Below, in pieces: positions 7,363 through 60,834 of a stretch of DNA of 64,000 bases. The notes under the pieces were generated by a model. That model saw only the letters and a program-made list of their open reading frames with translations. It ran no database searches and had not been told where the DNA came from. A program made the translations under genes and the position numbers. Position 1 is the first letter of the stretch. The number at the start of each line of letters is the position of its first letter. Source of the stretch: Oopsacas minuta (taxonomy: Eukaryota; Animalia; Porifera); the NCBI GenBank assembly GCA_024704765.1, contig JAKMXF010000110.1, positions 434,001 to 498,000 of the forward strand. The letters are read 5' to 3'.

Positions 7363-10300
7363 ATGATGGCTACAGTTAACTTCTTTAGCAAGAAATCATT
7401 GCCAATCTCGAGTGAAATCTCTCCTTTCTTTGACGACAGTTCACATGAGAATGGATTCATTAGTCCCCGTGATATCTTAGTGCCTGAAGATCAGTTCCTA
7501 GCTGAAGAGTATATAAGGCAAACGGTTCTACGACCAATACATAGTCATACACGATCACACTCAATTCACTTGCAATATTCTACACCCATTCTTGAAAGCG
7601 AAGAGGACATGGAAAGAATCAGGGATACAAAAACGAAGCTAGGGAGGGCACGGAAACTTTCTGGATCTTTTAATTTGTCACGATTGAGGATAGGTTCTGC
7701 TGGGAAAGTGGAAAACCAATCTCATACACTAACAGGAATACAGAATAGATCGCAGAGTTTTAGGGTAAACTCTGATTTAGATTCAAGTACAGTAGTTGCA
7801 AATGGAGGTAAATTGAAGAAGTGGAAGAGGAGATTATCTGGTTCTCTTCAGAAGCTTGCACGTACTCAAAGTCATTCTCCTTCTGAACTATTGGCACAGT
7901 CAAAGGACTCTCTATCATGTTCAAAAGGATTCCCTACTCTCAAGGAAGACTCAAGGGAGCCATTTGGTGATAGTACAGGTAAGTATAACATACAGTTAAC
8001 TCCCGTTATATCAAAGTCTGAAATTGTACAAATATGATCCCAATTGCCCAACCATCAAAGTAACATCGTACTCCGCTTATATCAAAGTAATTTGGGCTGT
8101 TTCGATTTAACGAAAGTTGACTGTAGTCACTGGTACTGACAAATAAATACGTACATTGCTTTATATATATTTACACAGAAATCACTTCAACTTTTAAATC
8201 TAAGAATTCAGAACCAGTTCCTTCTCCCAGTAGAACTAAATCAGTCCAACATCATATATCAAATACTCTACTAACAAAATCACATAGTGTAACAGGCTTA
8301 GAACATAATGGACGTGGCAATACATTACCTCGTAGCTATCAAAAACACGATCTTAACAAACACTTACTGGAAGGTACATCAGAGATGAGCGTGAGTGTCT
8401 CTACTATCCCCCAAGATCCAAATAATGAGATTTTTGTGGGACATAAAGTCAAATCTTCATCAGTTAGTCAGGTATGCACGATCTAAATTATTTGAATACT
8501 CCCATCTCATAACTATGAATAATTAATCTTACAGCAACGATCCTAATTATTTATTGGGGTGTGGCAAACTAAGTAGCGTTTGAAACATCTCTATGAGATT
8601 AAGATTTGCATAACATACCTCCAAACTGGTAGCTATATCTCTCATTATCTCACTTGTTTTCTATTACAATATTACATAATTGTAATTAAAGCTTATTCCA
8701 TTACTCATTTTGAGTATCGTGTAATTGTGAGATTATAATTTGTAAGTTTCTATGTTTGTAGAGGACAAAAGTTCAAATTTATAATTTCAATAAAATTGCC
8801 AATTAGAAAAGTTGTCGCATATTTATCTCCTACTTTGAAAATACTTCAAATTAATTCGGAAATAACTAGAAAGAATGCATTACCTTTTAATAATGCTGAT
8901 ATACTCAACAATAAATTTTTGCAAGCAGTTAAGGTGATCTAATACCTTGCGATTCTTAAACATGTTTTCCAGCTGTAATTTTCTTGATACCCGATATAAT
9001 AATTTTAACTACCATATCGAGACTCTACTGTTTATTATCTTATCAATGAAGATAGTGATAATACAGGGGATGAATGCGAAATTTTGAGAGTTTTTCAAAT
9101 TATGTGTTCCCCAAAGAAATTTAATAATTTCACGATTATCAGTGGCTACTAATGATGAAATTTAAAATCTAAGAACTTTGCTTAGAGCTCCAATTATTGC
9201 TGTGTAATTAATTTAATTCCTATTTTCAATTTATAGCCTGGAGTACCTATATCGTTTAATGGCAGTACTCCCCCATCAGCTGGCGAATTTTACCGCAGAA
9301 GAAGAAGACATTCCTGTGCAAGTCTATACTCTTCTGTCGAGAAGCTAGATGGATATAAAAAACTAGAGTTTCTAGGCCAGGGCTCGTATGCTACTGTCTA
9401 TAAAGGTGTTTGGGTTAGAACTGGTCAGAAGGTTGCACTCAAAGAAATCAAATTGAATCCAAATGAAGGAGCTCCATTCACCGCTATAAGGGAGGCGTCG
9501 CTTCTTAAAGGCCTCAGACACACTAACATCGTCACGTTGCATGACATTATACACGTGCCTAATAGACTATGTTTTGTGTTTGAATTTGTGGATACAGACC
9601 TTAGCAAGATTCTAGACACACAGGTTTGTTGTTAATTAACACCTCTAAACAATAATGGGTTCTTATACCCAACGTAAATAATTAAATTTACATTATAAGT
9701 AATTTAATGTTGAACTTTTCCACTTTTCTTTATGAATAGGGTTACTTTATGAAATTATCCTTTTATGGTTAGATAATCATATTAAGCTCAAAGTATACAA
9801 ACTAATACAAATTATATTTCTATAATAATTGTATTACTGTTATTGCATTATTTGATAATTTGTAATTTTTGGCTAAAGTCTAAAGTACTTTGGTAATACG
9901 TATCTCCTACTTTTCAAGTAAATACTTCCATTTTCTATTTTAAATGCAAAAATACCATCAGTAGACAATTGATTAGTTAATAATGATACGTTTTTATTTC
10001 GTTGGCTAGTTTATTCGCTATTAGGTGAGAATTAGAATATCGTTATGAGGTTAAGTCTCCGTTCGCAAACGTCTCTCTTCATTAGCACTAATATTATTAC
10101 TCGTAATTAGATGAATGTAGTTAGTGATAACCACATCTCATAGCACATCCTGTCGAAATATACCTGAACAACAATAACCTAATGAGTTAATTTGGATACA
10201 TATCTGTGGAGTAACGAACTTAAGTTATTTGACAACTCGTCTCGAGCTTTTGTCAGCTAGATAACATACCGCAGGTAATTGGCTTTAGAGTTTACAGTCA

Positions 10301-40899: not shown

Positions 40900-43534
40900 A
40901 TGGAAGATCCTATGGAGAAATATGATGGTATTCTAATGACAATAGCACAGCAACACGGACAGGGAGGGATAGAAGCTCTCTTGGATACATTCTTTGGATT
41001 TCTTAGAAGAAAAACTGATTTCTTTCAAGGAGCCCAGAATTTACCTACAGTATGTACAACCGTCCGATCACGATTATTTGGTTAAAATACAATCGTTTCA
41101 TTTCAAAATTGTTACAGTCAAGTCAACTCCAGTTACATCGAACACGGATATATCGAAATGCCCGCTTATATCAATCACGCTCCCTAGAGCTTCTATATCA
41201 GAAAGTTGATTATATGTTTTTTCTAGGTAGAACAAATAATAACTAAAAGTCTACGCAAAGAATTCAAAATATTCAAAGACGAGAAAGATCGAGAAAATCA
41301 AGAAAAGTTTAAAAAAGAAGAAAAACTTAGAAAAGCTAAAGAAGAGAAAGATAAATTGGAACAGAAGAGTAAGGTAAGGGAAGTTACAGATGAAGAAGCT
41401 AAGAGGTATTATTTGGATGATTTATTTGGCTAGAAGGAATGTTAATTTTATTGGTTTGCCAATTAGAATTGAGAGTGGTGAGACTGTAACTCCTCCTCCC
41501 GTAAAAGCTAAGGATAACCCTGAAACAGAGACTGATAGCAAATCAGGTAACTCATATAATTTTTCGAAAATACTGGGAAATTATTTAAAGGAGTTTGTAC
41601 ATATGTAGACGGAGAAGTAGAGAAAGATGAAGATGATGATCCTAACAAACTTAAGCCTAATGCTGGTAACGGAGCTGATTATGATACCCACAGCTGGACA
41701 CAGACACTAGTTGTAAGTACAATTTATATTACTTTTAAAATAATATTATAATCTATGTGAAATGATTTCCCCCCTAGGATATAGAGATTAAAGTACATCT
41801 TGTTGGTAAAGTTCGGTCCAGTGATGTAACTGTAAAGTTCGGTGTGGAATCTCTATTTATACAAATCAGAGGACAACCTCCTGTGATTAACGGTGATCTA
41901 CAGAAGAGAGTAAGTTCATTATACCATATATGGTAATATAGTACAATTAATATCTGTATATACAGATTATGCCAGATGACTGTGGTTGGCTTATAGACGA
42001 TAATATGTTAGTGCTTCAAATGGAAAAGAAAAATAAGAGTGAATGGTGGTCTAAACTAGTAACAACTGATCAGGAAATTAATACTAAGAAAGTTACTCCT
42101 GAGAACTCTAGATTATCTGACCTAGATGGAGAGACTAGAGGTAAGTTATATGTCAATCTCTTGACTAGGGGGGTATTCTAGGAATCGATTTTGCCAGCTC
42201 ATATGGAGTTGGCAATTAACTACAGTCTACTCGTGATATATCGAAGCTCAAGAAACCGCGATAATTTCTTCGATATGACGGGAGTTGTCCTTAATTGATA
42301 GACAATCTAAGCTCTAAATTTATTTAATTACAAATGATTGCAAAAAGAAATTTGAATTCTGAGAAATAACAAATATAAATTCTAATTCAGAAACAGAAAT
42401 ACCGAATGGATATACTAATTCTCCTCTCCCATGACCTTCTCTACCTATGACCTGAATAATCTCCCCTGACGGAGATAGTATCTTAATATCATGACGACAA
42501 TAATCACTAATGATAATATTATCAGATAGATCCAAGTAGAAAAAGAATGGATTACAAACCATACCGTCTCCCCCATTAGAAACACACGATTTCAACAGTT
42601 GTCCACTTCTAGAGTAGAAGTGGACACAATTTGGACTGTTGTCTAGCACTACGATACTATTTCTAGTGATGTTTACGTCATAAACGGAGAACAGCTGTTG
42701 AGTACCGAAATGATTTATGAATTTAAGTTCTTCAGAGAAAACCCCTACTCTATTATTCTCGCAATCAGCTACATACACATCTCCGTTATAGTCAATACAG
42801 AGTCCATACGGATTATCTAGCTCTCCCTTTCCTTTACCAAACATGCCAGTCTTTGCTACTTTGTAATCGCTGAACTTGTTTAAAGTGTGGTGGAATGCGT
42901 CCGTAACGACGACGTGATCTTCTATCACTTCAATACCCCATGGCCATACGAGTATGTCTTCTCCAAATCTTGTTACAAAATTTCCTTCAAATGTAACAAT
43001 GTATATGCAATTGTTACCTGTATCTGCTATGTAGATCAGCTGATTACGTTCATATAAAGCTAGACCTCTTGCAGTGACTAGTTCCTTCCCTACTGCAATA
43101 ATAGGTTGATTATTGTAAGAATAGCCCAGACTAGCTTCTACATTCACTGTTACATTTATTGCCATTGTTCGAGTTTAACTCAGTTTAAAATACTATTTTA
43201 TTAAAACAAACTCTTTTATACTTGCGAATACCTATTTACGTCGATCGTTGCTATGAGACTACTGAATCTTCCTGGCTGTGATTACCAATTGACTATCCCT
43301 ACCCCTATACATTTACCAGCGTTACGTAACGTTTAATGGACATTATTTGTTCTCATAAAGCCGCTACAGTATTTAATTAATGTACCTCTAGGTGTTGTAG
43401 AGAAGATGATGTATGACCAGCACAGACGTGAACAAGGTCTCCCTACGTCAGAGGAACAACAGAAACAAGATATTCTTAAGAAAATCATGGAGAAGAATCC
43501 TGGAATGGATTTCTCAGGGGCAAAGTTTACCTAA
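40900..43534 (+). CDS. NUDC: Nuclear migration protein NudC, about 7 exons
   Basis: [37 protein letters not shown]; [18 protein letters not shown]; CS domain [29 protein letters not shown]|G. Last exon 43392-43534 reads [37 protein letters not shown]. Confidence 0.93.
41113..41213. mobile_element. MITE family A, short, in NUDC intron 1
   Basis: tacagtca.gtcaactccagttacatcgaacacggatatatcgaaat..ccctagagcttctatatcagaaagttgat. Confidence 0.65.
42221..42290. mobile_element. MITE family A, minimal copy, in the last NUDC intron just past the NHL gene stop
   Basis: tacagtctactcgtgatatatcgaagctcaagaaaccgcgataatttcttcgatatgacgggagttg. Confidence 0.7.
42320..43165 (-). CDS. Intronless NHL-repeat (six-bladed beta-propeller) protein, nested antisense in NUDC intron 42141-43391
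   Basis: 281-aa ORF with NHL repeats: [103 protein letters not shown]. Confidence 0.88.
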   Translation of the reverse strand: MAINVTVNVEASLGYSYNNQPIIAVGKELVTARGLALYERNQLIYIADTGNNCIYIVTFEGNFVTRFGEDILVWPWGIEVIEDHVVVTDAFHHTLNKFSDYKVAKTGMFGKGKGELDNPYGLCIDYNGDVYVADCENNRVGVFSEELKFINHFGTQQLFSVYDVNITRNSIVVLDNSPNCVHFYSRSGQLLKSCVSNGGDGMVCNPFFFYLDLSDNIIISDYCRHDIKILSPSGEIIQVIGREGHGRGELVYPFGISVSELEFIFVISQNSNFFLQSFVIK

Positions 43535-44355: not shown

Positions 44356-47300
44356 ATGAAAAAACGATATTCTTTCGGCATGTGTACGTCTGAATCTTTT
44401 GTCATTATTAAAACGGAAAATTCCGATAGAGAAATTTCAAATTCCAGTCCAGAGAATAATTTTCAGAGTGAGCCTAATAATGAGAATTATTTGGATATCA
44501 GTTCGGAGGAGACTGATAAATGGAAGAATACTCTCAGCGGGAAAAAGAGAAGTTCTTTGTTTGCTGATGTTAAAACACTGGAACAAGATGGATGTTGTTC
44601 TGTAGCTTATGAGTATCTGTGTAGAATGGAAGAATTCAGAAGGTAAATTGACTTAGTAATCATGATTGCAGTATTCTTGAACATAGATGTATCGACATAC
44701 CGGCTGATATCTAAGTTTTAAGTTTTACAAATATGGTCCCAAACCCCCAAAGTAGACTAAATTTCATTAGTTATATCGAAGTTCGATGGACCGCGATAAT
44801 TACTTCGATATATCCGTGTTTAATGTAATGAGAGTTGACTTAAATATATCCTTTGTTTCCGATAGATACTTAAGTTTTATGCTGAATACAGATCTCGACA
44901 CACTACCTGCTAATCTAGCCTTTGAGCATCAGCTATCTAATGGAGTATGGTTATGTCAGCTGTTAGAGGAAGTACTACCTGCTAAAGATATTGCTAGCAA
45001 GATATTTGATGTAGATCATGATACTTACAAGGTAATTACCAATATATAGCCTGAATTACATTTCTAGCGTTATATAAAACAGCGGTTCCCAACCTGTGGT
45101 CCACGGACGACAGTTGGATCTCAAAATGTGTATTGCAGTCTATAATAGGCATCCACGGATGAAAAAGGTTTGGTACCGCTGCACTGTCTGTAATAAACAA
45201 ACTATAATGTACCAACGAACAACACACAAACAATTAACAACTATTACCTCTCCAGGAAGAAGGACTCGTATACAGACATCAACAGAACATCTGTCTGTTC
45301 TTAGACAATATACAGGAGCTATCATTCCCTGATGTACTAATGCCTACAACACAGGAAGTATTTGTAGATGAGAATAGAATTAAACTGATATACACAGCTT
45401 GTGCATTAGCTTATTTCCTAAGAGAGATAGAGCTTACTAATCATAAGATTGATAATCTGGAGAAATATCTTAAATTTGATGGTAAATTGGTATATAACAA
45501 TAATCTGAAAATGTTGTAGTGTAGCTCAGTTCCTGCAAGTATATAACAAAACATGTCAAAATATGGTTAAATATGATAAATATCCATGCTTAATATTGGC
45601 AGATGCCAAAATCGAATTCTACGCACACGATTACCCCTGACTAACAGTTGGAATGAAATATTTAGTATTATTTGATTTATGGCCAAAAGGTGTGAAAATA
45701 TTCGTAGTAGATGAATTTTATACCTTGGGTGCACGCCTACATCCTAAAATATACTTATGTGCCAATTTTCATGTTTGGTGATCTCCCTATAGGAACCTCA
45801 GATCTTTATATGTATGTCTTCCTTTAGAACCTGTATTAGTCGAGATTATGACTATGCTAGAGTCTAAAGCACTTGATCTACCATCATTTGAGTGCTTACA
45901 GTCGTTAGTAGATGATGAATTAATATATCAAAGATTGAAGTTTGATAACACACCGCTTCCTTCTCCTTCTCTATCCACATCAGAGAAGAGTTATATGACA
46001 ATGAAACCGTCCAAGCATGATAATTCCTCTGGGGACTCTGGGCCAGAAGGTCATTATTCTAATAAGGCGATGGACAAGGGGAGGGGGTCTAAAGGATATA
46101 CGGGTACTTTCGGACCTGATGGAGAACCGATTTATGAAGATGCTGACAAATATATCAGTGAGTTTTCAGTCTAACATTTTAGAAATACAATCAACTCTTG
46201 TTCTATCGAAGCTCAAGGGACCGTAAAAATATTCTTCGATATAACCGAAGAAATATATGTTGCGTTGATGGCTTGGAACCATATTTGTACAATTTCAGAC
46301 TTGGACATAAGCAAGTAGCGGGTATTTTGATATATCTATGTTCGATATAATGGGAGTTAACTGTGATTACAAATTGTCAATCAATATGTGAACTCCATAA
46401 TAACATAATTTAGTATATACTAGTGCCATATTTATTTTAATTAATATTTAATTAGTAGCTGTTTCAATTGTATTATAAGTAGTATGACTAGCAAATACAG
46501 ATATTAGGCAGATTATGTTTGGAATATATTCGTATTGTTATGATTGGTGTTGGTGATGATTTTTGTACACAGGACAAAGGAGAGCTCCGCCTTGCTATAT
46601 ATATATATTCTATCCACCTTTTTATACTTTGGAAATCTTTGCTATTTCATTGTTCAATATTTGTGCTACTTATAGAATCAGAAGTTCAGGTCTCGGGAGA
46701 TTTCCTAGACTCATTTGACAGTCCCCCTGATCCTCTAATATCTTCTACATTTGTATCTCCAGACAAAGATAACAATCCTAGGCGTAGGAAACTATCTAAA
46801 TCAAGAGTGCATGCAGTACCTGCTTGGGGGTCTTCTCAACTGACAATGTTCCCTTCTCGATTAGAATTTAATCTCTTTACCTGCAGAGATAATTCTATTA
46901 GAGTTTGTATGTACACTAAACCTAAGATTGATATGATTATACCAACTTCTCCTAGTAAGGGAATGCCGCTCAACCTTAAGCCACTACTTGAAAAGGTAGT
47001 TACATTATCTGTTAGTATCAGTCAACTCCTATTATATCGAAGCTCAAGGGACCGCGATACTCAATCGATATATGCGGGCATTCAATTTATTCGTGTTTGA
47101 TATAACGGGATTTTACTGTACATATTTTGGATGCTTTTTGATCAGTCATATGTCTGTTATATCTTCTATTATTTCTAGTTAAAGCAATCTGTGTTGTCTG
47201 GTAATATAGAAGGAATGATGGATGTTTTGAAATGCAAACATTTCCAATTTTCATCTGTTAAAGATTGTAATTCAAGCTTATACTTACAAGCTTTAAAATT

Positions 47301-50300
47301 AGAGTTAGAGGATAGTTTGAATAAATGTGCACTAGCTGTATATTATGGAATGAAGAAGGCACAATCTGAGAAATATCTAGCTCAGAGTGAGCAAGGAAGT
47401 TTCTTGTTAAGAGTAGGAAAGAAATCTCCTCCTAGTCTAACGTTTAGTTTCAGAAACAAGAGAGGGATTAAACATTTCAAGGTATGTCAGTATCTGTATA
47501 TTAACCTATCTATTACTGTGTAATACTAATCTAATCTCTTCATAGAAACATATAACCATTAGGCGTAGACCCCTCCCATAGCCTGCAATTTAAATTCTGA
47601 GATCCTCTGGTTTAATTTATCCGTGGTTAAACAGTTATAACGGTGCTTTCACTAATTCATCAGTTTCCTTATCGAAACTCTGATAATTGTCTCTTATTAC
47701 TTTGAGCAAAGTCATTCATGAACTACACTACGGTAATTGAATTAACACCAAACCGATAGACATTAGTTGTCTATGTTTTGTTACTGATTTAGAAATTAAT
47801 TTTGCTTTATAATACAGAACTAATATTAATTACAAATAAATATAATATTATTATAACTTCTTATAAATAGAGAGGAAATAGAAAATAATAGAAAACATTA
47901 TTTCATAAATATTAGTAATGAATTATTAATCACACACTACGCTACATAACCTGTGCTTCTACCTGTTGCTGTCGTTTAATTTCCCTCTCTGCACTAATCC
48001 GATTATATTTAGGTTTAAACCCAAACACATACACTATCAGCACTGCTATAGATAATGCATTAGTGAAATAGAGAAAGTATGTGTAATCTAGTCCCTGTAT
48101 ACTCGAGTTGACAGTTGTATTTACTGATACTCCACATTGACTGATGTGTATGTACTTTGAATCAGGTTGCTTTCCAAAGTACGGAGCAGAGAATGTTAGA
48201 ACTGATCCGAACAACTCACCGCATGTGTACAATATTCCACTACATGTAGCTACTGCTATCGGGTAGGTAACTTCAACAGCTAACTCCATGAAGACGGGTA
48301 TTTGTATTATTGCGAATATTGCATAAGAAATTTCGGCGAATGCGACTAAATATGGTTGATTTGGTATCCTGAATACTTCCAATATTAGGATAGAGCATAG
48401 TATTGATATACCCATTGTGAATTTTGACACTTCTTCAAACCACTTTGTTCTGTCTACAAAATACCCAACAAATATTCCAATTATCATACCGGATAAAATT
48501 CCTATACTCCCGATAATTCCGGCATATAACTGACTGTATCCATATGGACATATGAACTGAGGGTAGAGTACTAGAAAAGAATTACCCATACCTCCCTGTA
48601 ACATCCATACCACACATAGAAATAAGAATCGCCAGTTTCTCAGTAATTTCTTAACTCCAGGTAAAGTTTTCATCCCCTCCTCGGCTGAAGGGGAGGGTGG
48701 GACAGTTGGTTTCTTCTTCCACACACCAAATACAGTCATAGCCATGGCGACGAATGATAGAACAGTCGTAGCTATAAGTAATATTGGCAAGTTGCCTGTA
48801 GATTGTACAATAGCTGTGCTAACAAGCATTGAAGCTCCGTTACCCAAGACACCGCTTAGAGTAGCTATACTGTTAGCTAAGACTCTCTCATTTTCCGCGA
48901 ACCAGACAGACGCTAACTTAGCAGGGGAAATAAGGGCATATGACTGTGCTAACGCTATCGTAAATTGTCCTATAATAGCTGTTACGTAGCCTAAATACGG
49001 TATATTCATGGGAAGATAAGCTGATAACAGTCTGATCGATGTACCGAGAAAATTTAGAATAGTACCGAGCCATAGAGCTTCTCTTAAACTGAATGTATCC
49101 ATTACGTACATACCTAGTGGAGCACCAACAACACCTCCAATAAAGTATATACTTGAAATATAGTTAATCTCAATCTCAGTGACTTGATAATATTCACTAG
49201 CATATCTATATACTGATGCGAATGTTAGTAGGTTAATCCCGTGACTGAATGCGAATAATGCTAGAGACGTGAGTATGTACCATCTCCATGGATGTGGTTT
49301 GTAGATCGGCTGTAAGAGGGGGATAGAATCGTTTATATTCCCTGACATTAGGAATATAATTGTTTAGTATTACAAACACTTATCTATATGTATTATTTCA
49401 TGGATATTAGATATGTACTTCAATAAGAACGCAGGCTTTATGTATGATCCAGGAACTATTTGAACCTTACTTATATTGCCTAAACGACACCTCGTTATTT
49501 TGAGAGATACCCAGAAATATTCCCAAAAGTATTATGGCAATCTATATTTGTATTAACAGTTATTCTGAATTAATTATAGAATGTATTAACTAACATTTCC
49601 ATATCTTGATTAGACCAGTCAGTTTAGATATAATTATGGCTTTAATTGCTTCTATTTTTGTAAATATTATTTAATGCTGTCTAGTCTGTTTGTCTCTATT
49701 AATGATACAACAACAACAACAACAACAACAAAAATATAATTATGTATTTATGCACACATAAGTTTTAATAATATTTTAAATTCTCTTTTTAGATCCAAAT
49801 TAAATCCAACAAATTGTCTTTGAAGAAACGTGACGTATTGAGACATGAGTATAATTTTGTTGAAGATTTAATTCGTGAATTAGTTGACTTCCTACAAGAC
49901 GCACATAAGCAGACTCTATCTAACTGTGTTACTCCTGATCTAGCTATAAATCCTAATCTCAAGGAGTGTACCTTCTTTACTGTAAGTTGTGACAATTCTC
50001 GTTAAATGAAAGCTAAAGGGACCGCCGTAATTATATAACTGATGAAGCATATGTTACTTTGACGGTTTCGTTCATATTTATAATTTCATAATTCGATAAA
50101 AAACTGTACTTTTATGGTCTGTTTGGCCCAATTGCGAAGTACAGCATTTAAGGTATCATATTTGCAATTGATCAACTTTCTACGTACTTTTCTACATATT
50201 TGTTTATTATCCATAGTCATATTATATAGTCACTGTGTTTTGATAAAGTCCAATACTGTATTAATGCAGTTCACACACAAAAGGAACTAAGTTCCAAACT

Positions 50301-53300
50301 CAGAGCCTCTGCCACATGGGTACCTCCTAAAGAGAATCCCTACACTGGCCTATGGGCTAAAGAAATGGTTATTCCTGTAGACAGATTCGCGGCAGAACTG
50401 CTTCTGTTGCAGTACGGAACAGTTGGGTCTTATATTGTACGTCCTAAAGTGGAGGGTCTTAAGAGAGATTACGTTATTTCAATACGGTCAGTTGATCAGG
50501 ACTTAGTACAGATTCTAACTTAGCCTATCTAGAGAATATTTTTACTTCTATTCGAAGAATTTTTGTCCTTTCTAATAACTGGGAACTTTAACTTCCGTTA
50601 CATCGGAGCTCATTGAACCGCGATAATTAAGAGAAATCCGAATACCCGTAGAAATACATCTATATATTACTTTGACGCTTTGGGACAATATTTGTATAAT
50701 TTCAGTTTTCGATATATCAGTGTTTGATATAACTGGAGTTGAATGTAGTTTTTAATTCTCAAATTCTTCGCCCCAAACACTGACTAGTAATAATGTTCTT
50801 GCAAAAATACTGTGTAGGCCAGCAATAATCATAACAGTATTACATTTTCAATTGCCGAATCATCTTCAATTGATTTATTTTAACTTTTTCCTTACGAAAA
50901 ATAATATCTGTAAAATCATGATAAGGATAAGAAGAATTACTACAGGTACACCTGTACAGCATATCCATTGGGATGATTAATATCTAATTTTATCATTTTT
51001 AGTGATAGCATTTGTATTCATGGCACAATCATCAAAAGAAAATTATCGGATAATTTAGAATATATTTTACGAGTTACTTCCTGTTAAATTTTTATACTTT
51101 AAGCTATTATTAATTATGTCAATTTCTAAAAATATGAAGTATTGCCCATTCTTTCAGTAAATGAAGTAATCATTATTATTCAATTTGTTAAGGTTTGTTT
51201 TTATTTATATTTTCATATAATATTGAAAATCTTCGTTGCACTGAATTAATTTGACTTATAATTTGGTGACAAAATCGAGTGTTTTACTGTAAAATTCAAA
51301 GAAACATATTTTTCAGATCCTTTAAAGGTGTTCTAGTTACAGTTTTATCGAATTTATTTGTAATTTATTGTATTTCATAGAAGGATGCTATACCCTATAA
51401 CCCCACTAACATTCTACATTTCTCAATTATAATAATATCTGTTCGTCTGAGCTATTTATAGTAGATTACCAGATATATAATGTTGCTATATTTTAATGAA
51501 CATCTAAGTATTAGATATCACCGTATGACTCGAGTAGGCGATTGCACTTTTATATCATAATTGTACTGCAGAGGAGGTATTCTAGTTTATGTGCTAAATA
51601 CAAGTTAGATGAACTTAGTAGAATTTGATATAGTAGCTCCGCGCGGTTGTCACGAGTTTAATATGGCTGTAGGATAGAATGCAATTTATGCAATAATTAC
51701 TAATTAGAAATTGAATACCTTTGAAATGTGTATACGTTAATATCACGATGGAATGATTTTACTGTATATGCTTTAAAGAAATGATTACAATCAGTTGTGG
51801 CTAGGTTACATCTTGAAGGGTTGGAGCAGTTCCTAAATTTACAAAATTGCGATACGATGGTCCTCAAAGCTATTCCTCCCCCCAAGAATGGTATCATCCA
51901 TGAGTACAGGTATTTCTGGTCAAGCACTGGACGTGCAGAAACTCTTTTTTAGACTGTAGCACATTGACTCTATACATATTTGAGTCTCATTGTCGGCCTT
52001 TTGTGCCCTTCATGGCTGCTGAACTGACACAATCCTTGGTTAAGACATGCCTTATGTACTTAGGAGTTATACTCAGAAGTTATAACCATAAATTATCATA
52101 TTTCTAATTAGCTATAATCCAATTTCTTTATAACAACGTGAGTATTTCTTACAATTATCTCTCTACACTTATATACACTTCTAGAACCTGATTACTGTAA
52201 TTCTAGCGACCCTTACAACTAGCAACTTGAATATCAGAATTCTGAATTTCCTCGAGAACTTTAATTTTTCAAATTCTCTGTAATTATGTCACTACTCTTA
52301 AGCCGAGCCTATTACAGCTAATATTTCTAAATATAAATTATTGATTATACATTAAGGTTAATCTAGTCATGGCTTATATCAGAAATTTAGCCTATAATAT
52401 TACCCTCTGAATAGCCATACGCCCTTTAGGTTGTCTTGTGACTATGCTTGAACTTTCTCTCATGGGCAGGTCTATTTGTAATTAAAGTATGTCTCTCAGA
52501 GATGAGAAATAGTTCTAATTTTGTGAGTAGATCAGGTATTAACTCAGATATAACTACAGCAATTCATAATATGAATTGAATTCGAGGTCCCTAGCACTTC
52601 GTTATAGCGATTATTATTGTATTTGCTTGTAAAACATTTCCTCTAATTTTTTGCATTTGTCAACAGAAACTTAGATTAAAACTTTGGCTTAAATATTCAG
52701 CAAATAAATATTCCGTTATATTTAGTATACAAAGGAAATTTGTAAATGCATTGTATACTTTAATTTGCTTTGATTGCTATTTGTTATTCTTGATTCTTCT
52801 AAATTTTGAATATTCACTTACCCACATTTCTATGAAATGAATTTTTACAAAGAAACCTCGTGTATACATGGTGGAGTATGACTTGGTACCAGGGCATGTC
52901 CAGATAATCGAGGTTGCACTATAATTGGATCAATATAGCATCTAAAAATGGATCGTGTGCAGACCTGGTGTTGATTACTTTACTACTGAGTGATTACAAT
53001 TATGATTACTTTCTGCTCGATTACAATAGTAATCGTAACCAATCCCTAGGTTGGTTGTATATCTACATTTTTGAGATCCTGTGGACCCCCTGCTGTCGTC
53101 GGGGGAGCATCCAAGGGGTTCATTGATCCCAGGTTGGCAACCGTGGAATTACCCATATACGATTAGAATAGGAATGAAGGTGCGTTCCCTTCCCATAACA
53201 CAGTTACAATATGATCCAATCCAAACTATTAGTTTCAACAAAATCGCCTTGTAATACCAGACGGTATTTCCAGAATTTCCTTACCCACATTTTATTACGA

Positions 53301-56300
53301 ATACATTTCTAATAATAATTTTTAGTAGTAATGACTCACTATTCTCCCACACAAACCTGTTTTAGATAGAAATAACCTTCTATATATGTATTTATATCTT
53401 TATTAATAGTATACTATTAGCTATTTAATAATTTAGCTTACACTATATTGAATATGTCTGATTCAGATGTATTGTCTATACTAACAGCTAACCGCGAGAA
53501 TTCCTTCGATAAAACCGATGGAATTTATGTTACTTTGGGGGTTTAGAACCATATTTATACAATTTCAAACTTCGATATAAGCGGGTATTTATATCTTCGT
53601 GTTCGATATAACTGGAGTTAACTGTGTTATTCTTTTTAGAACTGAGAATGACGTAACTCATGTCAAGGTAGTTGAGGGAGAGAATGGTTATTCTCTTCCT
53701 AACTCTACTGATGCTACTCCTAGCTTAGAACAGTTCGTAGAAGTATTTACCTTCAAGGAGAGTCAGTTAGCTAATATCTCTCTCAAACCGGTTAGACTCC
53801 CAACTGAAAAGATTGAAGAGTTCAAGAAGAAAGGTTGTTGTAATTATAGTGTAATACACACAAATATGGGTCTGGAACGCCGAAAATAATGTATTATAAT
53901 ATTCCTACTGGTTGTATCCCACAAACGTTGAAGAAATGACAAGAATCTTCGAACAAATATTTCTTCACCTTTGAAGTACTAAGGTATTTCCCTGAAAACT
54001 ACTGTACGAATGAACTTCAGCGCTTATCAGTAATAATATCAGACTACCAGTATATTACAGTGTTAATTTCCTGTAGTAAGGTAGTTATAATTCTAATTTG
54101 CTAACTATTGTTGGTATATCTTGACATATTTTTGTTTCTGTTCCAATGCAATGGAATACTTTCCAAATACACAGTGAAATTCGGCATAACTTAATTGTTG
54201 TAATTTCAATTCGGTAGGAAATGCTTTCCAATTTTTGTGTAAAGACAAATTGATTCCTTTACAATTTGGAATCTTCTCCAGCCATTATGACTGACTGATT
54301 TTCCAATTTTCCTTTTCTGCTTATGTAAAACTGATGAATTTTCGAAGAAATATTGTTGCAACTTCCATAAATCATAAATATACATTGATAAGTGATTGAT
54401 AATTCATAATATCTTATTAATGGTTTAACCTTAATTAAAATCATGCAACCTAGCTATTTCTATATTTAATCCTAATTTCAACTCTTTAATTATTGTTACA
54501 TAACCGGAGAGATCGGTGCACATACTCTTGATCAGCTGATTAATCAAATAAATATTAATCACATTCCATTTATCCGCGTAAGTTGTCGACTAACTGATTA
54601 TCCTGACTGTCTTCTATGAATAGCAACTATTGGATGTATACGTATATGTTTGTTACTTTCTAAAGCTATTCTATTTATAATTTAATTCACGTAGTACAAA
54701 CGATATGGATTTACATCTAATAAGTTTCTCTTCGTCATAGTAGATTAATGAATCACAGTTACGAATATGAGATTTTTGCCAGCATTAGTAGCAGTTCGAA
54801 AATTCCGATTTTGGCAGGATAAACTCTTAGTTCAGTGTCATGCCCCGCAATTTGTGTCCTTCATGGCTGCTCACTTTTGGGTACCCGCCAAAACACCTTA
54901 ATAAATCCCTGCGTTCAGCTTATGGCCGAAATGCGTGACGTCATGCATTTTGAGATTCTAAAGCTCGGTATGAAAGCCTCAATATTTATTTAGTACAATC
55001 CGCATTACGTCAAAATTATTTAAATATTTAATGACTTTTTTGGATTATCTAACCCGAACTTTTGTACATTCTGACTTGTAACTCATTAGAAATAATGTGT
55101 GCATACTCTAGGCTGTTATATTAGTCTCAATATTGTGTACACCTCATTCGTATAATGTTGATTCTTCAGTAAATTTGTTATTTTAAGAATTCTAATTAAT
55201 TTAAATATTTTGATAAATTACTGTCTAGAGAAATTACTTGCAGTATCATATAGTATGAAGATACAAAAATGTGCATTTTCTGGTATTTGTATGCTATTTT
55301 TGTAAGTTTCATACACCGATAGTTAAGCCTTTTAAATGTGTTGAATACAATTAAATTCCTCATTTTCACGTCGAGTTGTTTCTTAGAAATTGTTTGACCT
55401 AAAATTTGAATTGTGTGGATATATTGTTTGTGTATTATGCCATGAGGTTGTAGCCCTATCATATAGGTATCAAGTAAGAGTTTAAACCTGGAAAAGTTGG
55501 TCATATTGAAACTCGACCAACTGGACCATCTCTCTCTTATGTGCTTGAATGATACACATTCAATTCGTTTCAGGCAGTTTGCCCCAATATAGCTGTGTTC
55601 CCGATTAACCTATAAATAATAGTATTACCCCTATGGTATGAGTTGTAATTAGGATTCGCAATTAACAACCAGTAAGGTCAGATGCTAGGCAATAAACTAC
55701 GCAGAATAATTCTGGTATGATGTTCACAAAAATTATCAGGAATTCTCTATTAATGAAGCATTCAAGTAGAGCAATTATGAGAACAAGAGAGATAATATTA
55801 TCATATATACTATCAAGCCATACGTGACATAGAATAGAGGCGATATAACTAATTGGCTATCGTTATAAGAGACTTTTGGGGAAATCTGACTTATAATTCA
55901 TAGAATAAATAACGAATATACATGTAACATACTTTAATATTTCATATGTGCTTATTAGTTGGTATGGTATGGTTTGGATTATTATGTAGTAATATTTGAT
56001 TGCATGTTATTTCTGTCATAGATGAAGAGCGTAGAGGAACACAAGCTGTTCAGGGTACACTCCCTCCTGTGGTTAAGAAATGTGCCCTGAAGAAAGGGCA
56101 ATCTGTTGAGGACCTACTCAAATCTCTCCCTCCTCCATTTGTGCACGCAACCATGACCACGTCCACCAGTGGTTATGAAGGGGACACAGACACCCTTGAG
56201 TCAATCCCTCCCACTCCTCCTCCCCCTTTCTGTCCCGATATGGCCTTCAGCCCGGCGACATCCACTAGAGATATATCAGAGCATAAATTAGCTCATACTT

Positions 56301-57836
56301 CACTAGCAGCAGCTAATGAACGTTCCTGTTCTTTCACTGCTCTTAATTCATCTCTTATTATTCCAGAAGATAGCATTGTTGATTCAGTGACTAATCTCAT
56401 TGATAGTTTTGGTTAGTTTGTGTAATACAGTCGACTACCGTTACATCCAACAAGGAAATTTTGAAATTCCCATTATATAGAAGTCCCAAACTGCCAAAGT
56501 AACATAATTTTCAACGGTTATGTCTAAGTAATTATCGTGGGGGACAGACATATTATTAATCTTATCACGAGCAATTAGTTTATGTTTCCTATTTAGCATC
56601 TTGTCCAGTCCTCCAAGAACAACCTCTAAGTCCTACTCCTCCTAGGAAAAATCTAACCCAGAGAGTTTCAGCAATACACACTCCATTACCTCCTGTTCCA
56701 ATACACTCTCCAAGTTTGAATAAAAAGTTGAAAGATTCCTTTCCTAACACTTCACCGGATGTTCAGGACTATATGTTCAATGAGTATGATCATCCCCTTG
56801 CTCCCCCTGTCCCATTCCGACCCCATGCTCTGACTAAACCTACTTCTGAGAATGATTTCAAGGGAATGTGGAGAAATCAGAAACCTGATAGCAGGATTAA
56901 GAGACAAAGACCTCTCTCTATTAAAATGACAAGGTTTGTATTATTTGTTCGTTCTGTATATTAAATACTCCGAAAGATTATAAGTTTCCATTAAACAAAG
57001 TCTTGTGCTGTCGGCACAGAATAAAATTTAACATTTTTACAGCTCAGTTCAGGATTTCCGTCCACCAATGCCCTCGAGCATCAGTACTATAGACTTCTCA
57101 TCTCCACAACGTTCAGATTCAGACCTGGCTAGAACGAGAAAGGGTAGTGTTGGATCCCGACCCTTTAATGTCAACCCAATTGGTCCTACCAACAGATATC
57201 ATACTCAGGTGGAGCGTAAAATTAGTACAAACCTTTTCCCTACTCAACCTACTCTACCTATCGTAGAGGACAGACCTACATCACAGCTTACTCCTGAGCC
57301 TATACAGGAGCCTGATGCTGTTGATGATAATCTACCGGATATTGAGGGTTGGAGCATTGAAGAGGTAAGTCATTATTCGTGCTTCTTTAAGTAGTTTGTT
57401 GATGTAGAGTATATCTCATATTATCTATTGAATATTACACTCAATGGGTCACATAGATTAATTGGTTCCCAACCTTTTTTCACTCATGGACCAGGATTTG
57501 ACCCCCTATACCAACTTTAACGCATTCTGTGGACCCCTTGCTGTCGTCCATGGACCGCCAAGGGGTCCATGCCTCACAGTTTGGGACCGTTGCACCGAAG
57601 GATGTCTGTTTTCAAGCTGTTGGTACATATCTTTTTATTTGTGTATTTATCAGGTTGGGACTTGGCTAGAAGAAATTGGACTTCCTCAATACAAAACTAC
57701 ATTTTCAGATAACGATATAGATGGATCTGTTCTTACAATGCTAACTAATGAGAATCTCAAAGATGATATAGGGATTACTTCCTTCGGACATCGAGCCAAG
57801 ATCATCAAACAGATAAAGAATATACAAAAATATTAA
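44356..57836 (+). CDS. Multidomain signalling adaptor: IQGAP-type calponin-homology domain, Tyr/Ser-rich linker, SH2, SH2, Pro-rich region, C-terminal SAM; 13 exons, 1167 aa by my model
   Basis: Exons 44356-44642, 44866-45031, 45256-45481, 45828-46157, 46676-46995, 47179-47481, 49793-49981, 50230-50486, 53640-53833, 56022-56411, 56597-56933, 57043-57364 and 57654-57836 all join by GT-AG in matching phase (3504 nt). CH: AYEYLCRMEEFRRY..LSNGVWLCQL..GLVYRHQQNICLFL. SH2-1: YYGMKKAQSEKYL..GSFLLR..LTFSFR..IKHFKI. SH2-2: VDRFAAELLL..GSYIVRP..YVISIRTENDVTHVKV. SAM: WSIEEVGTWLEEIGLPQY..NDIDGSVL..DIGITSFGHRAKII. Confidence 0.8.
44690..44842. mobile_element. MITE family A, degenerate, in intron 1 of the CH-SH2 gene
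   Basis: ttacaaatatggtcccaaacc..gttatatcgaag..ccgcgataattacttcgatatatccgtgtt..gagagttgact. Confidence 0.6.
45080..45181. mobile_element. hAT-like MITE (family D; TIR CAGCGGTTCCCAACC)
   Basis: cagcggttcccaacc ... ggtttggtaccgctg are inverted termini, with internal gtggtccacggac. No target-site duplication is visible. Confidence 0.6.
45530..45795. mobile_element. Interspersed repeat family E in intron 3 of the CH-SH2 gene
   Basis: The reverse complement aligns with 28190-28400. Confidence 0.6.
46186..46364. mobile_element. MITE family A in intron 4 of the CH-SH2 gene
   Basis: tacaatcaactcttgttctatcgaagctcaagggaccg ... ttcgatataatgggagttaactgt. Confidence 0.78.
47018..47120. mobile_element. 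MITE family A in intron 5 of the CH-SH2 gene
   Basis: cagtcaactcctattatatcgaagctcaagggaccgcgata ... tttgatataacgggattttactgta. Confidence 0.75.
47942..49348 (-). CDS. SLC49A3: Intronless MFS transporter of the SLC49/FLVCR family (closest to SLC49A3/MFSD7), nested antisense in intron 47482-49792
   Basis: 468-aa ORF with about 12 hydrophobic segments; WRWYIL, INYISSIYFI, SPAKLASVWFAENERVLANSIA, FVDRTKWFEEVSK, ELAVEVTYPIA. Confidence 0.82.
   Translation of the reverse strand: MSGNINDSIPLLQPIYKPHPWRWYILTSLALFAFSHGINLLTFASVYRYASEYYQVTEIEINYISSIYFIGGVVGAPLGMYVMDTFSLREALWLGTILNFLGTSIRLLSAYLPMNIPYLGYVTAIIGQFTIALAQSYALISPAKLASVWFAENERVLANSIATLSGVLGNGASMLVSTAIVQSTGNLPILLIATTVLSFVAMAMTVFGVWKKKPTVPPSPSAEEGMKTLPGVKKLLRNWRFLFLCVVWMLQGGMGNSFLVLYPQFICPYGYSQLYAGIIGSIGILSGMIIGIFVGYFVDRTKWFEEVSKFTMGISILCSILILEVFRIPNQPYLVAFAEISYAIFAIIQIPVFMELAVEVTYPIAVATCSGILYTCGELFGSVLTFSAPYFGKQPDSKYIHISQCGVSVNTTVNSSIQGLDYTYFLYFTNALSIAVLIVYVFGFKPKYNRISAEREIKRQQQVEAQVM
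49990..50108. mobile_element. MITE family A, degenerate, in intron 7 of the CH-SH2 gene
   Basis: ctcgttaaatgaaagctaaagggaccgc..atatgttactttgacggttt..ataatttca..ttcgataaaaaactgta. Confidence 0.55.
50586..50747. mobile_element. MITE family A in intron 8 of the CH-SH2 gene
   Basis: aacttccgttacatcggagctc..ccgcgataatt..tactttgacgctttgggac..tttgatataactggagttgaatgta. Confidence 0.7.
53070..53145. mobile_element. hAT-like MITE remnant (family D)
   Basis: ctgtggaccccctgctgtcgtc..ccaaggggttc..caggttggcaaccg matches 57525-57592. Confidence 0.5.
53480..53625. mobile_element. MITE family A next to the acceptor of intron 8 of the CH-SH2 gene
   Basis: atgttactttg..ccatatttatacaatttcaaacttcgatataagcgggtattt..gttcgatataactggagttaactgt. 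Confidence 0.7.
56426..56545. mobile_element. MITE family A, truncated, in intron 10 of the CH-SH2 gene
   Basis: tacagtcgactaccgttacatc..gtcccaaactgccaaagtaacata..gtaattatcgtgg. Confidence 0.6.
57460..57592. mobile_element. hAT-like MITE (family D) in the last intron of the CH-SH2 gene
   Basis: ggttcccaaccttttt..catggacc..tgtggacccc..ggggtccatg..agtttgggaccgttg. Confidence 0.6.
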
Positions 57837-59626: not shown

Positions 59627-60834
59627 CTATGGGGTAAACTCCCAAGGCTGGGAACTAGAGGCTCCAGTTGTTAATGTAGTTTCTAAAGTCTGTGGCTGTA
59701 CACAAGGAATGTCTCCGTAAAGACAGTTGTCAAATTCCATGAGTTGACCTATGAAACCAATGTTGGGGTCGATGCATGGCCTTTGTAGCTTTACAAATTG
59801 GATAGTGCCTTCAAACCTCCACTGCCTTGACCACATAAGGTATGCAATTACCATAGTGGAAGATCGCGATACACCCGCATGGCAATGTATAAGAACACGG
59901 CCTTGTTTTGTCTTTGCTGCATCAATGAATGCGAATGCCAGTTTGAAAAATTCTTTGAGTGATTGCCTATGAGAATCCATGGCAGGGAGTGATAAATAGT
60001 GAATTTTGTTTTCAGAGAAATTATTAGGGATATCTGTCGTCATGTTGATGATATGTGTGATGCCGTTAGCTTGCAGAACTCTCAAGTTTGTTGCATCTTC
60101 TCTTCCCGAAATGTAGAGTGTCTCTGTGATTCGGGAGATAGGATTAGTTATTCTTGCAGGCTCCGGCAAAGAATACTCGGCTTTTACTACTGAAGAAACT
60201 GTGCATAGAGTTCGGCAAGATGTACAGAGGTGAGGAAACATTGATGAAAAACTTTCGAAACCACCTAAAAAATTGAAAAAATATTATAAAACAATATTCG
60301 AAGAAAGTGCTTATTCTGTTTTTAAAGAAATTTCAATTTACCTTGTAAATAATGCGTATTGTCACCAAAGATGGAAAGTAATTTTTCTACGAGGATTGTA
60401 GCAAAAGAAGTTGGGTTCTCGAAGTCTTTCATGCCTTTTTCTGTATGGCAGATAATTGCAGATTTTATTTCAGAAACATCTCGACATTGCATTTTTGATT
60501 CCTTGATCAGATCAAGCGGTGAAATTATACCTTTCTTGAGTCTCCTTTGGATTAAACTGGTTGAAGCGATATTGACGGCATTTATAATGTGATTCTGGGT
60601 ATAGTTGCAGAAAGGACGTATGTCTATTACTATTACTGGAGTTGTACTCGATAGAATCTGAATAGAAAGAAAAATCATAAAATATATTTCAATAAAATAA
60701 ATGCAAATAATTTTTGGAATTTTCATAAAACTTACCGAAGACAATATTTCTGCTTCGATGCCGGACAGATTTGGGTTGGTCCTGGATGCGTAGCAGCCCA
60801 ATCCTGCAGGTAGTGATTGTGTCATTGAAACCAT
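59627..60834 (-). CDS. Dual-specificity MAP kinase phosphatase (rhodanese/CH2 + DSP), 3 exons (60834-60736, 60657-60342, 60264-59627)
   Basis: VIDIRPFCNYTQNHIINAVNI, kinase-interaction motif IQRRLKKG, YLQG|GFESFSSMFPHLC, catalytic VLIHCHAGVSRSSTMVIAYLM, RPCIDPNIGFIGQL. The DUSP subfamily is not resolved. Confidence 0.92.

Follow-up and report, generated by a model that had tools for sequence, protein, structure and literature searches.

Introduction

The modules that concern this report are found, in other combinations, in several well-known signalling proteins. Vav joins a type-3 CH domain and an SH2 domain in a protein linking tyrosine kinases to the actin cytoskeleton. SHIP2 (INPPL1) and SLP-76/BLNK bring together SH2, a Pro-rich region and a SAM domain, with SH2-recruiting Tyr motifs in SLP-76 as well. 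SHP1/2, Syk/ZAP-70, PLC-gamma, PI3K p85 and RASA1 carry two SH2 domains per chain, and Tensin, which is non-catalytic, associates with actin filaments at adhesion sites and recognizes phosphotyrosine there by means of an SH2 domain. Here we describe a gene of the glass sponge Oopsacas minuta (Hexactinellida) whose 1167-residue product, referred to below as the adaptor, combines an IQGAP-type CH region with two SH2 domains, a Pro-rich region and a C-terminal SAM domain. The gene occupies positions 44356-57836 of a 64,000-nucleotide stretch of contig JAKMXF010000110.1 (the window).

The adaptor departs from each of these precedents. Vav's DH-PH-C1 core, its SH3-SH2-SH3 cassette and its catalytic action on Rho GTPases are missing, Pfam recognizing only CH, SH2 and SAM domains. 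SHIP2 has one SH2 domain, a 5-phosphatase and no CH domain, whereas the adaptor gives no Pfam match to an inositol 5-phosphatase. In SLP-76 the SAM domain is N-terminal, the single SH2 domain is C-terminal and there is no CH domain, the SLP-76/BLNK type being defined by an N-terminal SAM or acidic Tyr region ahead of that SH2 domain; in the adaptor the order is reversed (SH2 domains within residues 494-745, SAM at residues 1099-1167) and the SH2 domain is doubled. The phosphatase, kinase, lipase, SH3, PH, C2 and RasGAP domains of the tandem-SH2 proteins are absent. Tensin, with its PTEN-like region and SH2-PTB unit, has unrelated domains, lacks both CH and SAM, and is a functional analogue only. 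In the IQGAP family (IQGAP1-3, fission-yeast Rng2 and budding-yeast Iqg1), the CH domain is homologous to the N-terminal ~180 residues of the adaptor, including the AYEYLC helix and the LPxF...(D/N)EL segment. The IQGAP repeats, WW, IQ, GAP-related and RasGAP_C domains are missing, however, and past residue 257 the adaptor is unrelated to IQGAPs.

Results

A single gene divided in the public annotation

When rebuilt from the raw sequence, the gene consists of 13 exons (Table 1) with a coding sequence of 3504 nucleotides, stop codon included, specifying 1167 amino acids. All 12 introns begin with GT and end with AG, and the frame is kept throughout. Exactly this structure had been proposed in the original prediction, made from the sequence of the window; its junction pairs 47481/49793, 50486/53640 and 53833/56022 proved correct, and the motifs that it named (AYEYLC, LPSF..DEL, IYQRL, SYMTM and IYEDA) were all found. 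In the annotation of assembly GCA_024704765.1, the same interval holds two genes: LOD99_15720, whose 557-residue product (P0014) has a CH and a weak SH2 domain, and a second gene encoding a 637-residue protein (P0015) with SH2 and SAM domains, named 'Sterile alpha motif domain-containing protein 15-like'. Translated, the 13 exons give residues 1-544 of P0014 followed by residues 15-637 of P0015, without a mismatch.

The public split is placed at intron 6 (47482-49792), where it cuts the first SH2 domain (SH2#1) in two. Exon 6 covers positions 6-53 of the 77 positions of the Pfam SH2 model and then ends, its alignment to the Grb2 SH2 domain reaching the exon's final residue (...GIKHFK). Exon 7 resumes with IQIKSNKLSL...EYNFVEDLIRELVDF, which corresponds to the betaD-to-alphaB part of an SH2 domain. 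The residues unique to the public models are of intronic origin: P0014 ends in 13 residues read through beyond the donor at 47482, and the first 14 residues of P0015 stem from a CAA repeat within intron 6. A transcript from another glass sponge, Vazella pourtalesii, crosses the exon 6/exon 7 junction; its product (P0007) reads ...GIKHFKIQCKNNKLSLKKRDVLRHEYNFVEDL... at this place. Since intron 6 divides SH2#1 and the mRNA of an orthologue joins the two halves, LOD99_15720 and the 'SAMD15-like' gene are one Oopsacas minuta gene, wrongly split in the public annotation, and the one-gene claim of the original prediction stands.

Intron 6 harbors a single-exon gene for an MFS_1 transporter, separate from the adaptor; its product is identical to the one on the public record of contig JAKMXF010000110.1. 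To our knowledge, Augustus in its default mode predicts no gene inside the intron of another. The split is likely to have arisen from the combination of the nested gene with this default behavior. The Oopsacas genome (accession JAKMXF000000000) was annotated with BRAKER1 and Augustus using unstranded reads (PMC10280926).

Orthologues in other glass sponges

An exhaustive phmmer search with exon 6 returned a cluster of Vazella pourtalesii Trinity transcripts in EukProt. P0007, an isoform of 886 amino acids, contains in uninterrupted form the CH region, the linker, a complete SH2#1, the second SH2 domain (SH2#2) and the Pro-rich region. By tblastn it follows exons 1-10 of the window collinearly, with 52-87% identity. 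In one glass-sponge assembly from ENA (L002/L005; ERZ25069837) the gene is complete, with its 13 exons in the same order and a SAM exon that is 80% identical, and the neighbors are those of Oopsacas: eIF3c and NudC upstream, and a DSPc phosphatase downstream on the opposite strand. Identity between the L005 copy and the Vazella transcript is 84%, and we therefore assign the former to a relative of Vazella other than Vazella itself. In a further ENA assembly (L003/L004; ERZ25072730) exons 1-9 are collinear. In these three other glass-sponge sources the exons occur in the same order with 54-86% protein identity. As judged from these alignments, conservation of the adaptor exons is far beyond chance. 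L003/L004 also has an MFS gene inside this intron, on the same strand and with 61% identity; none is found in intron 6 of L002/L005, which measures 1.6 kb.

Between Oopsacas and L005, identity amounts to 82% in the CH region, 78% in the Tyr-motif linker, 85% in a block spanning residues 385-445, 86% in SH2#1, 84% in SH2#2 and 78% in SAM, and to about 61% in the N-terminus, the inter-SH2 linker and the Pro-rich region. The Tyr-motif linker is about as well conserved as the recognized domains. The start of exon 1 (MKKRYSFGM) is kept in the Vazella transcript and in L005.

Vazella, L005 and L003 have an additional short intron after ...SLNKCAL, within the equivalent of Oopsacas exon 6 (Table 1). 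This points either to a loss in the compact Oopsacas genome or to a gain in the other species.

The CH region and its IQGAP kinship

The CH domain scores 30.2 bits in P0014 and 32.6 bits in P0007 (Pfam cut-off, 26). When residues 80-257 were compared with PDB (phmmer, E <= 0.01), only five distinct sequences were retrieved, all of them CH domains of IQGAP1 or Rng2, with E values from 8e-22 to 2e-15 and alignment to residues 16-189 of IQGAP1. No Vav CH domain is among these matches. The IQGAP1 alignment extends over the AYEYLC helix that precedes the CH fold and over the LPxF...EL segment that follows, so that lead-in helix, CH domain and the LPSF..DEL tail all align with IQGAP, as had been predicted. 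Exon 3 alone likewise matches IQGAP-type CH. Comparison of the region with fish IQGAP3 gives 46 invariant columns, and the best full-length matches outside glass sponges are to IQGAP3 (E 4e-14), through the CH region. No IQ motif (PF00612) was found by Pfam in any exon or in P0014, P0015 or P0007 (E <= 0.1 to 10); the exons and the three proteins likewise yielded neither RasGAP (PF00616) nor RasGAP_C (PF03836), both of which the IQGAP3 matches do carry. This absence agrees with the original prediction.

Tandem SH2 domains, Pro-rich region and SAM domain

SH2#1 spans residues 494-585 and SH2#2 residues 648-745, with about 60 residues between them. The Pfam SH2 model (cut-off, 21) scores 28.8 and 27.6 bits in the two Oopsacas halves (P0014 and P0015) and 64.6 bits over two stretches in P0007; in P0015, SH2#2 covers positions 7-76 of the 77 of the model. 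Read from the sequence, the betaB5 Arg is retained in both domains (FLLR in SH2#1, YIVR in SH2#2), as is the betaD His (KHFK and THVK). By Pfam score and by these pocket residues, both SH2 domains qualify as predicted phosphotyrosine readers. The nearest relatives of SH2#1 are Grb2 and GADS, and the best PDB relatives of SH2#2 are the N-SH2 of SHP2 and RASA1. Two ideas about the pair were considered and discarded. A recent tandem duplication was rejected on the grounds of the scant resemblance of the two domains (Smith-Waterman z of 1.7) and of introns that differ in position and phase; a degenerate, RASA1-like SH3 domain between the two was rejected because the linker gives no Pfam match and has no ALYDY or WW signature.

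PxxP motifs number 17 in the protein, 15 of them in exons 10-12 (e.g. PPTPPPPF, PLPPVP and APPVPFRP), where the Pro-rich region extends over ~350 amino acids. The SAM domain (residues 1099-1167) scores 68.7 bits with Pfam SAM_1 and 69 bits with SAM_2. Among solved structures it comes closest to the SAM domains of liprin, SARM1, caskin, Shank and DGK-delta, a set that includes the polymerizing or oligomerizing SAMs of SARM1, Shank, DGK-delta and caskin. Thus, the CH domain, both SH2 domains and SAM are all above cut-off, and the two SH2 domains with their pocket Arg and His, the Pro-rich region and the C-terminal SAM follow one another as the original prediction had it. Pfam searches of the exons, P0014, P0015 and P0007 revealed no DH, PH, SH3 or catalytic domain. 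None of RASA1's SH3, PH, C2 and RasGAP domains was detected in the exons of the window (those of the inter-SH2 linker being searched to E 10) or in the same three proteins (E <= 0.1).

Tyr-motif linker and a conserved block

YxxM is the classical binding site of PI3K p85. The linker in exon 4 contains six Tyr residues, namely Y260 in LIYQ(R/K)L, Y282 in SYMTM, Y303, Y317, Y329 in PIYEDAD and Y335, all invariant in Vazella, L005 and L003. In the Pro-rich region, Y809 (GYEGD) and Y951 (EYDHP) are kept wherever sequence covers them. Among the other motif types, [ILV]xYxx[LV] resembles immunoreceptor tyrosine-based inhibitory motifs and YDxP is Crk/Nck-like.

Downstream of the linker, the original prediction had overlooked a 61-residue block (residues 385-445; QLTMFPSRLEFNLFTCRDNSIRVCMYTKPKIDMIIPTSP...) that is as conserved as the recognized domains and gives no Pfam match. 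An AlphaFold2 model of P0007 residues 375-615, covering the block and SH2#1, was built from a 4-row alignment and had a mean predicted local distance difference test (pLDDT) score of 44; for the CH region (P0014 residues 70-270; 6 rows including IQGAP3) the mean was 40. The low confidence is attributable to the shallowness of the alignments.

Distribution and origin of the architecture

At E <= 0.001, the hits of exon 6 in the exhaustive phmmer search were confined to proteins of glass sponges and two of the demosponge Geodia barretti: CAI8041069.1 (P0004, 365 amino acids, automatically named 'Ras GTPase-activating protein 1') and a close variant of 408 residues (P0012). P0004 is collinear with residues 394-742 of P0007 in one stretch (E 2e-19). 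Each of its SH2 domains (SH2a and SH2b) matches its positional counterpart best, and SH2a spans both halves of SH2#1. The frame of P0004 is open upstream of the called start, P0004 and P0012 differ at their C-termini, and the Geodia-like contigs retrieved measure only 0.6-2 kb; look-ups of genomic context for P0004 and the Vazella proteins returned no record. No SH3, PH, C2 or RasGAP domain was found in P0004 by Pfam at E <= 0.1. Searches for relatives were bounded by query length and word-based filters; within these bounds, word-indexed searches allowing long proteins (up to 1550 amino acids, or 1207 for the profile search) returned only Vazella, Oopsacas and, through the CH region, IQGAP3. 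A literature search found no published CH, SH2 and SAM architecture for sponges or choanoflagellates, and the Oopsacas genome paper mentions neither SH2 domains nor tyrosine kinases (PMC10280926).

The combination of an IQGAP-type CH region with two SH2 domains and SAM looks undescribed, and is confirmed so far in glass sponges only. No protein or paper was found to have it, as the original prediction had supposed. Its further statement that the protein is lineage-specific holds only provisionally: the full architecture has been seen in no group other than glass sponges, but the tandem-SH2 core has a collinear homologue in Geodia.

Classical exon shuffling would be expected to leave domain-sized exons flanked by introns of matching phase. 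In the adaptor gene no domain boundary lies at an intron: the CH region starts in exon 1 and ends in exon 4, SH2#1 starts in exon 6, SH2#2 runs from within exon 8 to within exon 9, and SAM begins within exon 12. Moreover, SH2#1 and SH2#2 are interrupted at different positions and in different phases. For these reasons the exon shuffling invoked in the original prediction is unsupported, although an old shuffling event could have been blurred by later gain and loss of introns.

Map of the region and neighboring genes

Three alternative splice sites were discarded in arriving at the exon limits of Table 1. The exon 8 acceptor was fixed at 50230, not 50284, by tblastn with the Vazella protein P0007, and the resulting exon agrees in sequence with P0015. 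Exon 11 starts at 56597, as in P0015, and not at 56672. A donor at 56386 for exon 10 was dismissed because in both L005 and Vazella the frame is open through the equivalent of ...VTNLIDSF. Several introns contain a short interspersed repeat (core ...tcgaagctcaagggaccg...), which yields spurious look-alike fragments of open reading frames (SSRDR...).

Upstream of the adaptor gene, an intact open reading frame of 281 codons with NHL repeats (Pfam NHL, 58 bits) lies inside the NudC gene on the opposite strand. It is not among the publicly called genes, and on this ground is probably a second, unannotated nested gene. Downstream, an open reading frame for a DSPc dual-specificity phosphatase adjoins a rhodanese-like one; the two may be exons of an MKP-type phosphatase.

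Table 1. Coordinates of the adaptor gene and other features (positions in the window unless a source is named)
Feature	Position	Strand	Remarks
NudC gene	40900-43534	+	contains the NHL-repeat open reading frame
NHL-repeat open reading frame	42320-43165	-	inside NudC
Exon 1	44356-44642	+	residues 1-96; start MKKRYSFGM, low-complexity N-terminus, AYEYLC lead-in helix of CH region
IQGAP-type CH region	44593-45919	+	residues 80-257; end of exon 1, exons 2 and 3, start of exon 4
Exon 2	44866-45031	+	CH region
Exon 3	45256-45481	+	CH region
Exon 4	45828-46157	+	residues 227-337; post-CH LPSF..DEL segment, Tyr-motif linker
Exon 5	46676-46995	+	residues 337-443; includes conserved block, residues 385-445 (46819-46995)
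Exon 6	47179-47481	+	residues 444-544; helical pre-SH2 segment, N-terminal half of SH2#1 (from 47329), ends ...GIKHFK
Nested MFS_1 transporter gene	47942-49348	-	single exon, 468 residues, Pfam 90.5 bits; within intron 6
Exon 7	49793-49981	+	residues 545-607; C-terminal half of SH2#1 (to 49915), start of inter-SH2 linker
Exon 8	50230-50486	+	residues 608-693; rest of inter-SH2 linker, N-terminal half of SH2#2 (from 50350)
Exon 9	53640-53833	+	residues 693-758; C-terminal half of SH2#2 (to 53796)
Exons 10-12	56022-56411, 56597-56933, 57043-57364	+	residues 758-1107; Pro-rich region; SAM begins at 57338
Exon 13	57654-57836	+	residues 1108-1167 and stop; SAM domain
Interspersed intron repeat	about 44720-44850, 46190-46350, 47010-47110, 50000-50030		
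DSPc phosphatase and rhodanese-like open reading frames	59627-60241 and 60322-60834	-	adjoining
Extra intron after ...SLNKCAL	L002 10147-10200; L003 and L004 about 10150-10290		absent from Oopsacas exon 6

Discussion

The adaptor has interaction modules only and no catalytic domain, and is read here, for that reason, as a cytoplasmic scaffold. We put at roughly 0.75 the probability of the reading as a whole: a single gene encoding a protein of 1167 residues, with its IQGAP-type CH region, Tyr linker, block of residues 385-445, SH2 pair, Pro-rich region and SAM domain, which would connect tyrosine-kinase signals to actin. In IQGAP1 the CH domain lets the N-terminal half attach to the sides of filaments, and bundling requires dimerization, supplied by another region (PMC8886817). 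By analogy with IQGAP1 and Rng2, the CH region of the adaptor would attach to actin filaments along their sides, and SAM would provide the self-association that IQGAP1 takes from its W-IQ region for filament bundling. The SH2 pair would dock on tyrosine-phosphorylated receptors or scaffolds, while the adaptor's own phosphorylated Tyr motifs and PxxP motifs could recruit further SH2 and SH3 proteins. The net effect would be a coupling of tyrosine-kinase signals to local actin cross-linking or anchoring. We infer this role between phosphotyrosine and actin from homology, as we do its three components: actin binding, phosphotyrosine binding and oligomerization through SAM.

Several observations weigh against this interpretation. 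Identity between the CH region and the CH domains of IQGAPs is only about 30%, and actin binding may for this reason have been lost. In SH2#1 the alphaA2 Arg is replaced by Lys. With pLDDT values of 40-44, the AlphaFold models lend the CH and SH2#1 regions no structural confirmation, and for every member of the family the function is a prediction from homology. Finally, the transcript that spans the exon 6/exon 7 junction is that of Vazella, and it ends in exon 10, short of the SAM exons; the link to the latter therefore rests on the Augustus gene model, the in-phase splice sites and the genomic collinearity of L005.

The record GCA_024704765.1 is annotated with two genes, and the transcript considered here is that of Vazella, which would suit the view that the public models are correct as deposited, namely, that an independent CH protein of 557 residues and an SH2-SAM protein of 637 residues are encoded on either side of the MFS gene. 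Two such proteins, however, would each be left with half an SH2 domain and would owe the C-terminus of one and the N-terminus of the other to intron sequence; the orthologous Vazella mRNA crosses the very junction at issue, and in L005 the exons concerned lie 1.6 kb apart, separated by an intron without a gene. We regard such an arrangement as very improbable. More credit, if still well short of an even chance, is due to the idea that the architecture is older than glass sponges and belongs to a family, poriferan or wider, of which databases contain the other members only in truncated or split form. The Geodia proteins speak in its favor, being collinear with residues 394-742 of P0007 (E 2e-19), with SH2 domains that match by position, an open frame upstream and versions that differ at the C-terminus; the bounds set on the searches by length and word filters are a further point on this side. 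On the other hand, the exhaustive search with exon 6 (E <= 0.001) gave glass sponges and Geodia alone, and the searches allowing long proteins (up to 1550 or 1207 residues) gave no other relative of the non-CH part.

Granting a single gene, the protein might be mainly a Tyr-phosphorylated docking platform of the Gab, IRS or SLP-76 kind, whose CH region serves in calmodulin or partner binding or in dimerization, with no direct role on actin. The invariance of the Tyr motifs and the abundance of PxxP would be natural in such a platform, and a single type-3 CH domain, of the sort present in calponin or Vav, does not reliably bind actin by itself. The N-terminus of IQGAP1, according to a paper cited within PMC8886817, also dimerizes and binds calmodulin. 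Nevertheless, the CH region resembles only the IQGAP/Rng2 subtype, whose isolated CH domains bind F-actin, and few parts of the protein are better conserved (82%). We hold a platform without direct contact with actin to be doubtful. The scaffold between tyrosine kinases and actin remains our preferred reading.

Glass-sponge tissue is largely a syncytium. One could imagine the adaptor as a phosphotyrosine-gated, self-assembling actin cross-linker of glass sponges, in which SAM replaces IQGAP dimerization and the Tyr motifs, once phosphorylated, bind the SH2 pairs of neighboring molecules. Kinase activity would then convert monomers bound to filament sides into a multivalent network by which cortical actin is bundled or anchored, and the block of residues 385-445 would be a new small switch domain. 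We offer this elaborate scheme as a speculation, with the odds clearly against it.

The adaptor is built only from familiar signalling modules, and choanoflagellates, filastereans and early animals already provide well-documented cases of SH2 domains shuffled in particular lineages, which limits the novelty of the finding. Two public gene models are corrected in the only annotated Oopsacas genome, and the locus offers a concrete example of how nested genes let automatic annotation hide real domain architectures. It also presents a rare instance of reuse of the IQGAP CH module outside IQGAPs. An early-branching animal lineage thereby gains, in its phosphotyrosine toolkit, a combination of IQGAP-type CH, two SH2 domains and SAM that looks undescribed. 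If the proposed role is true, the adaptor would tie tyrosine-kinase signalling in sponges directly to actin, by non-enzymatic means.

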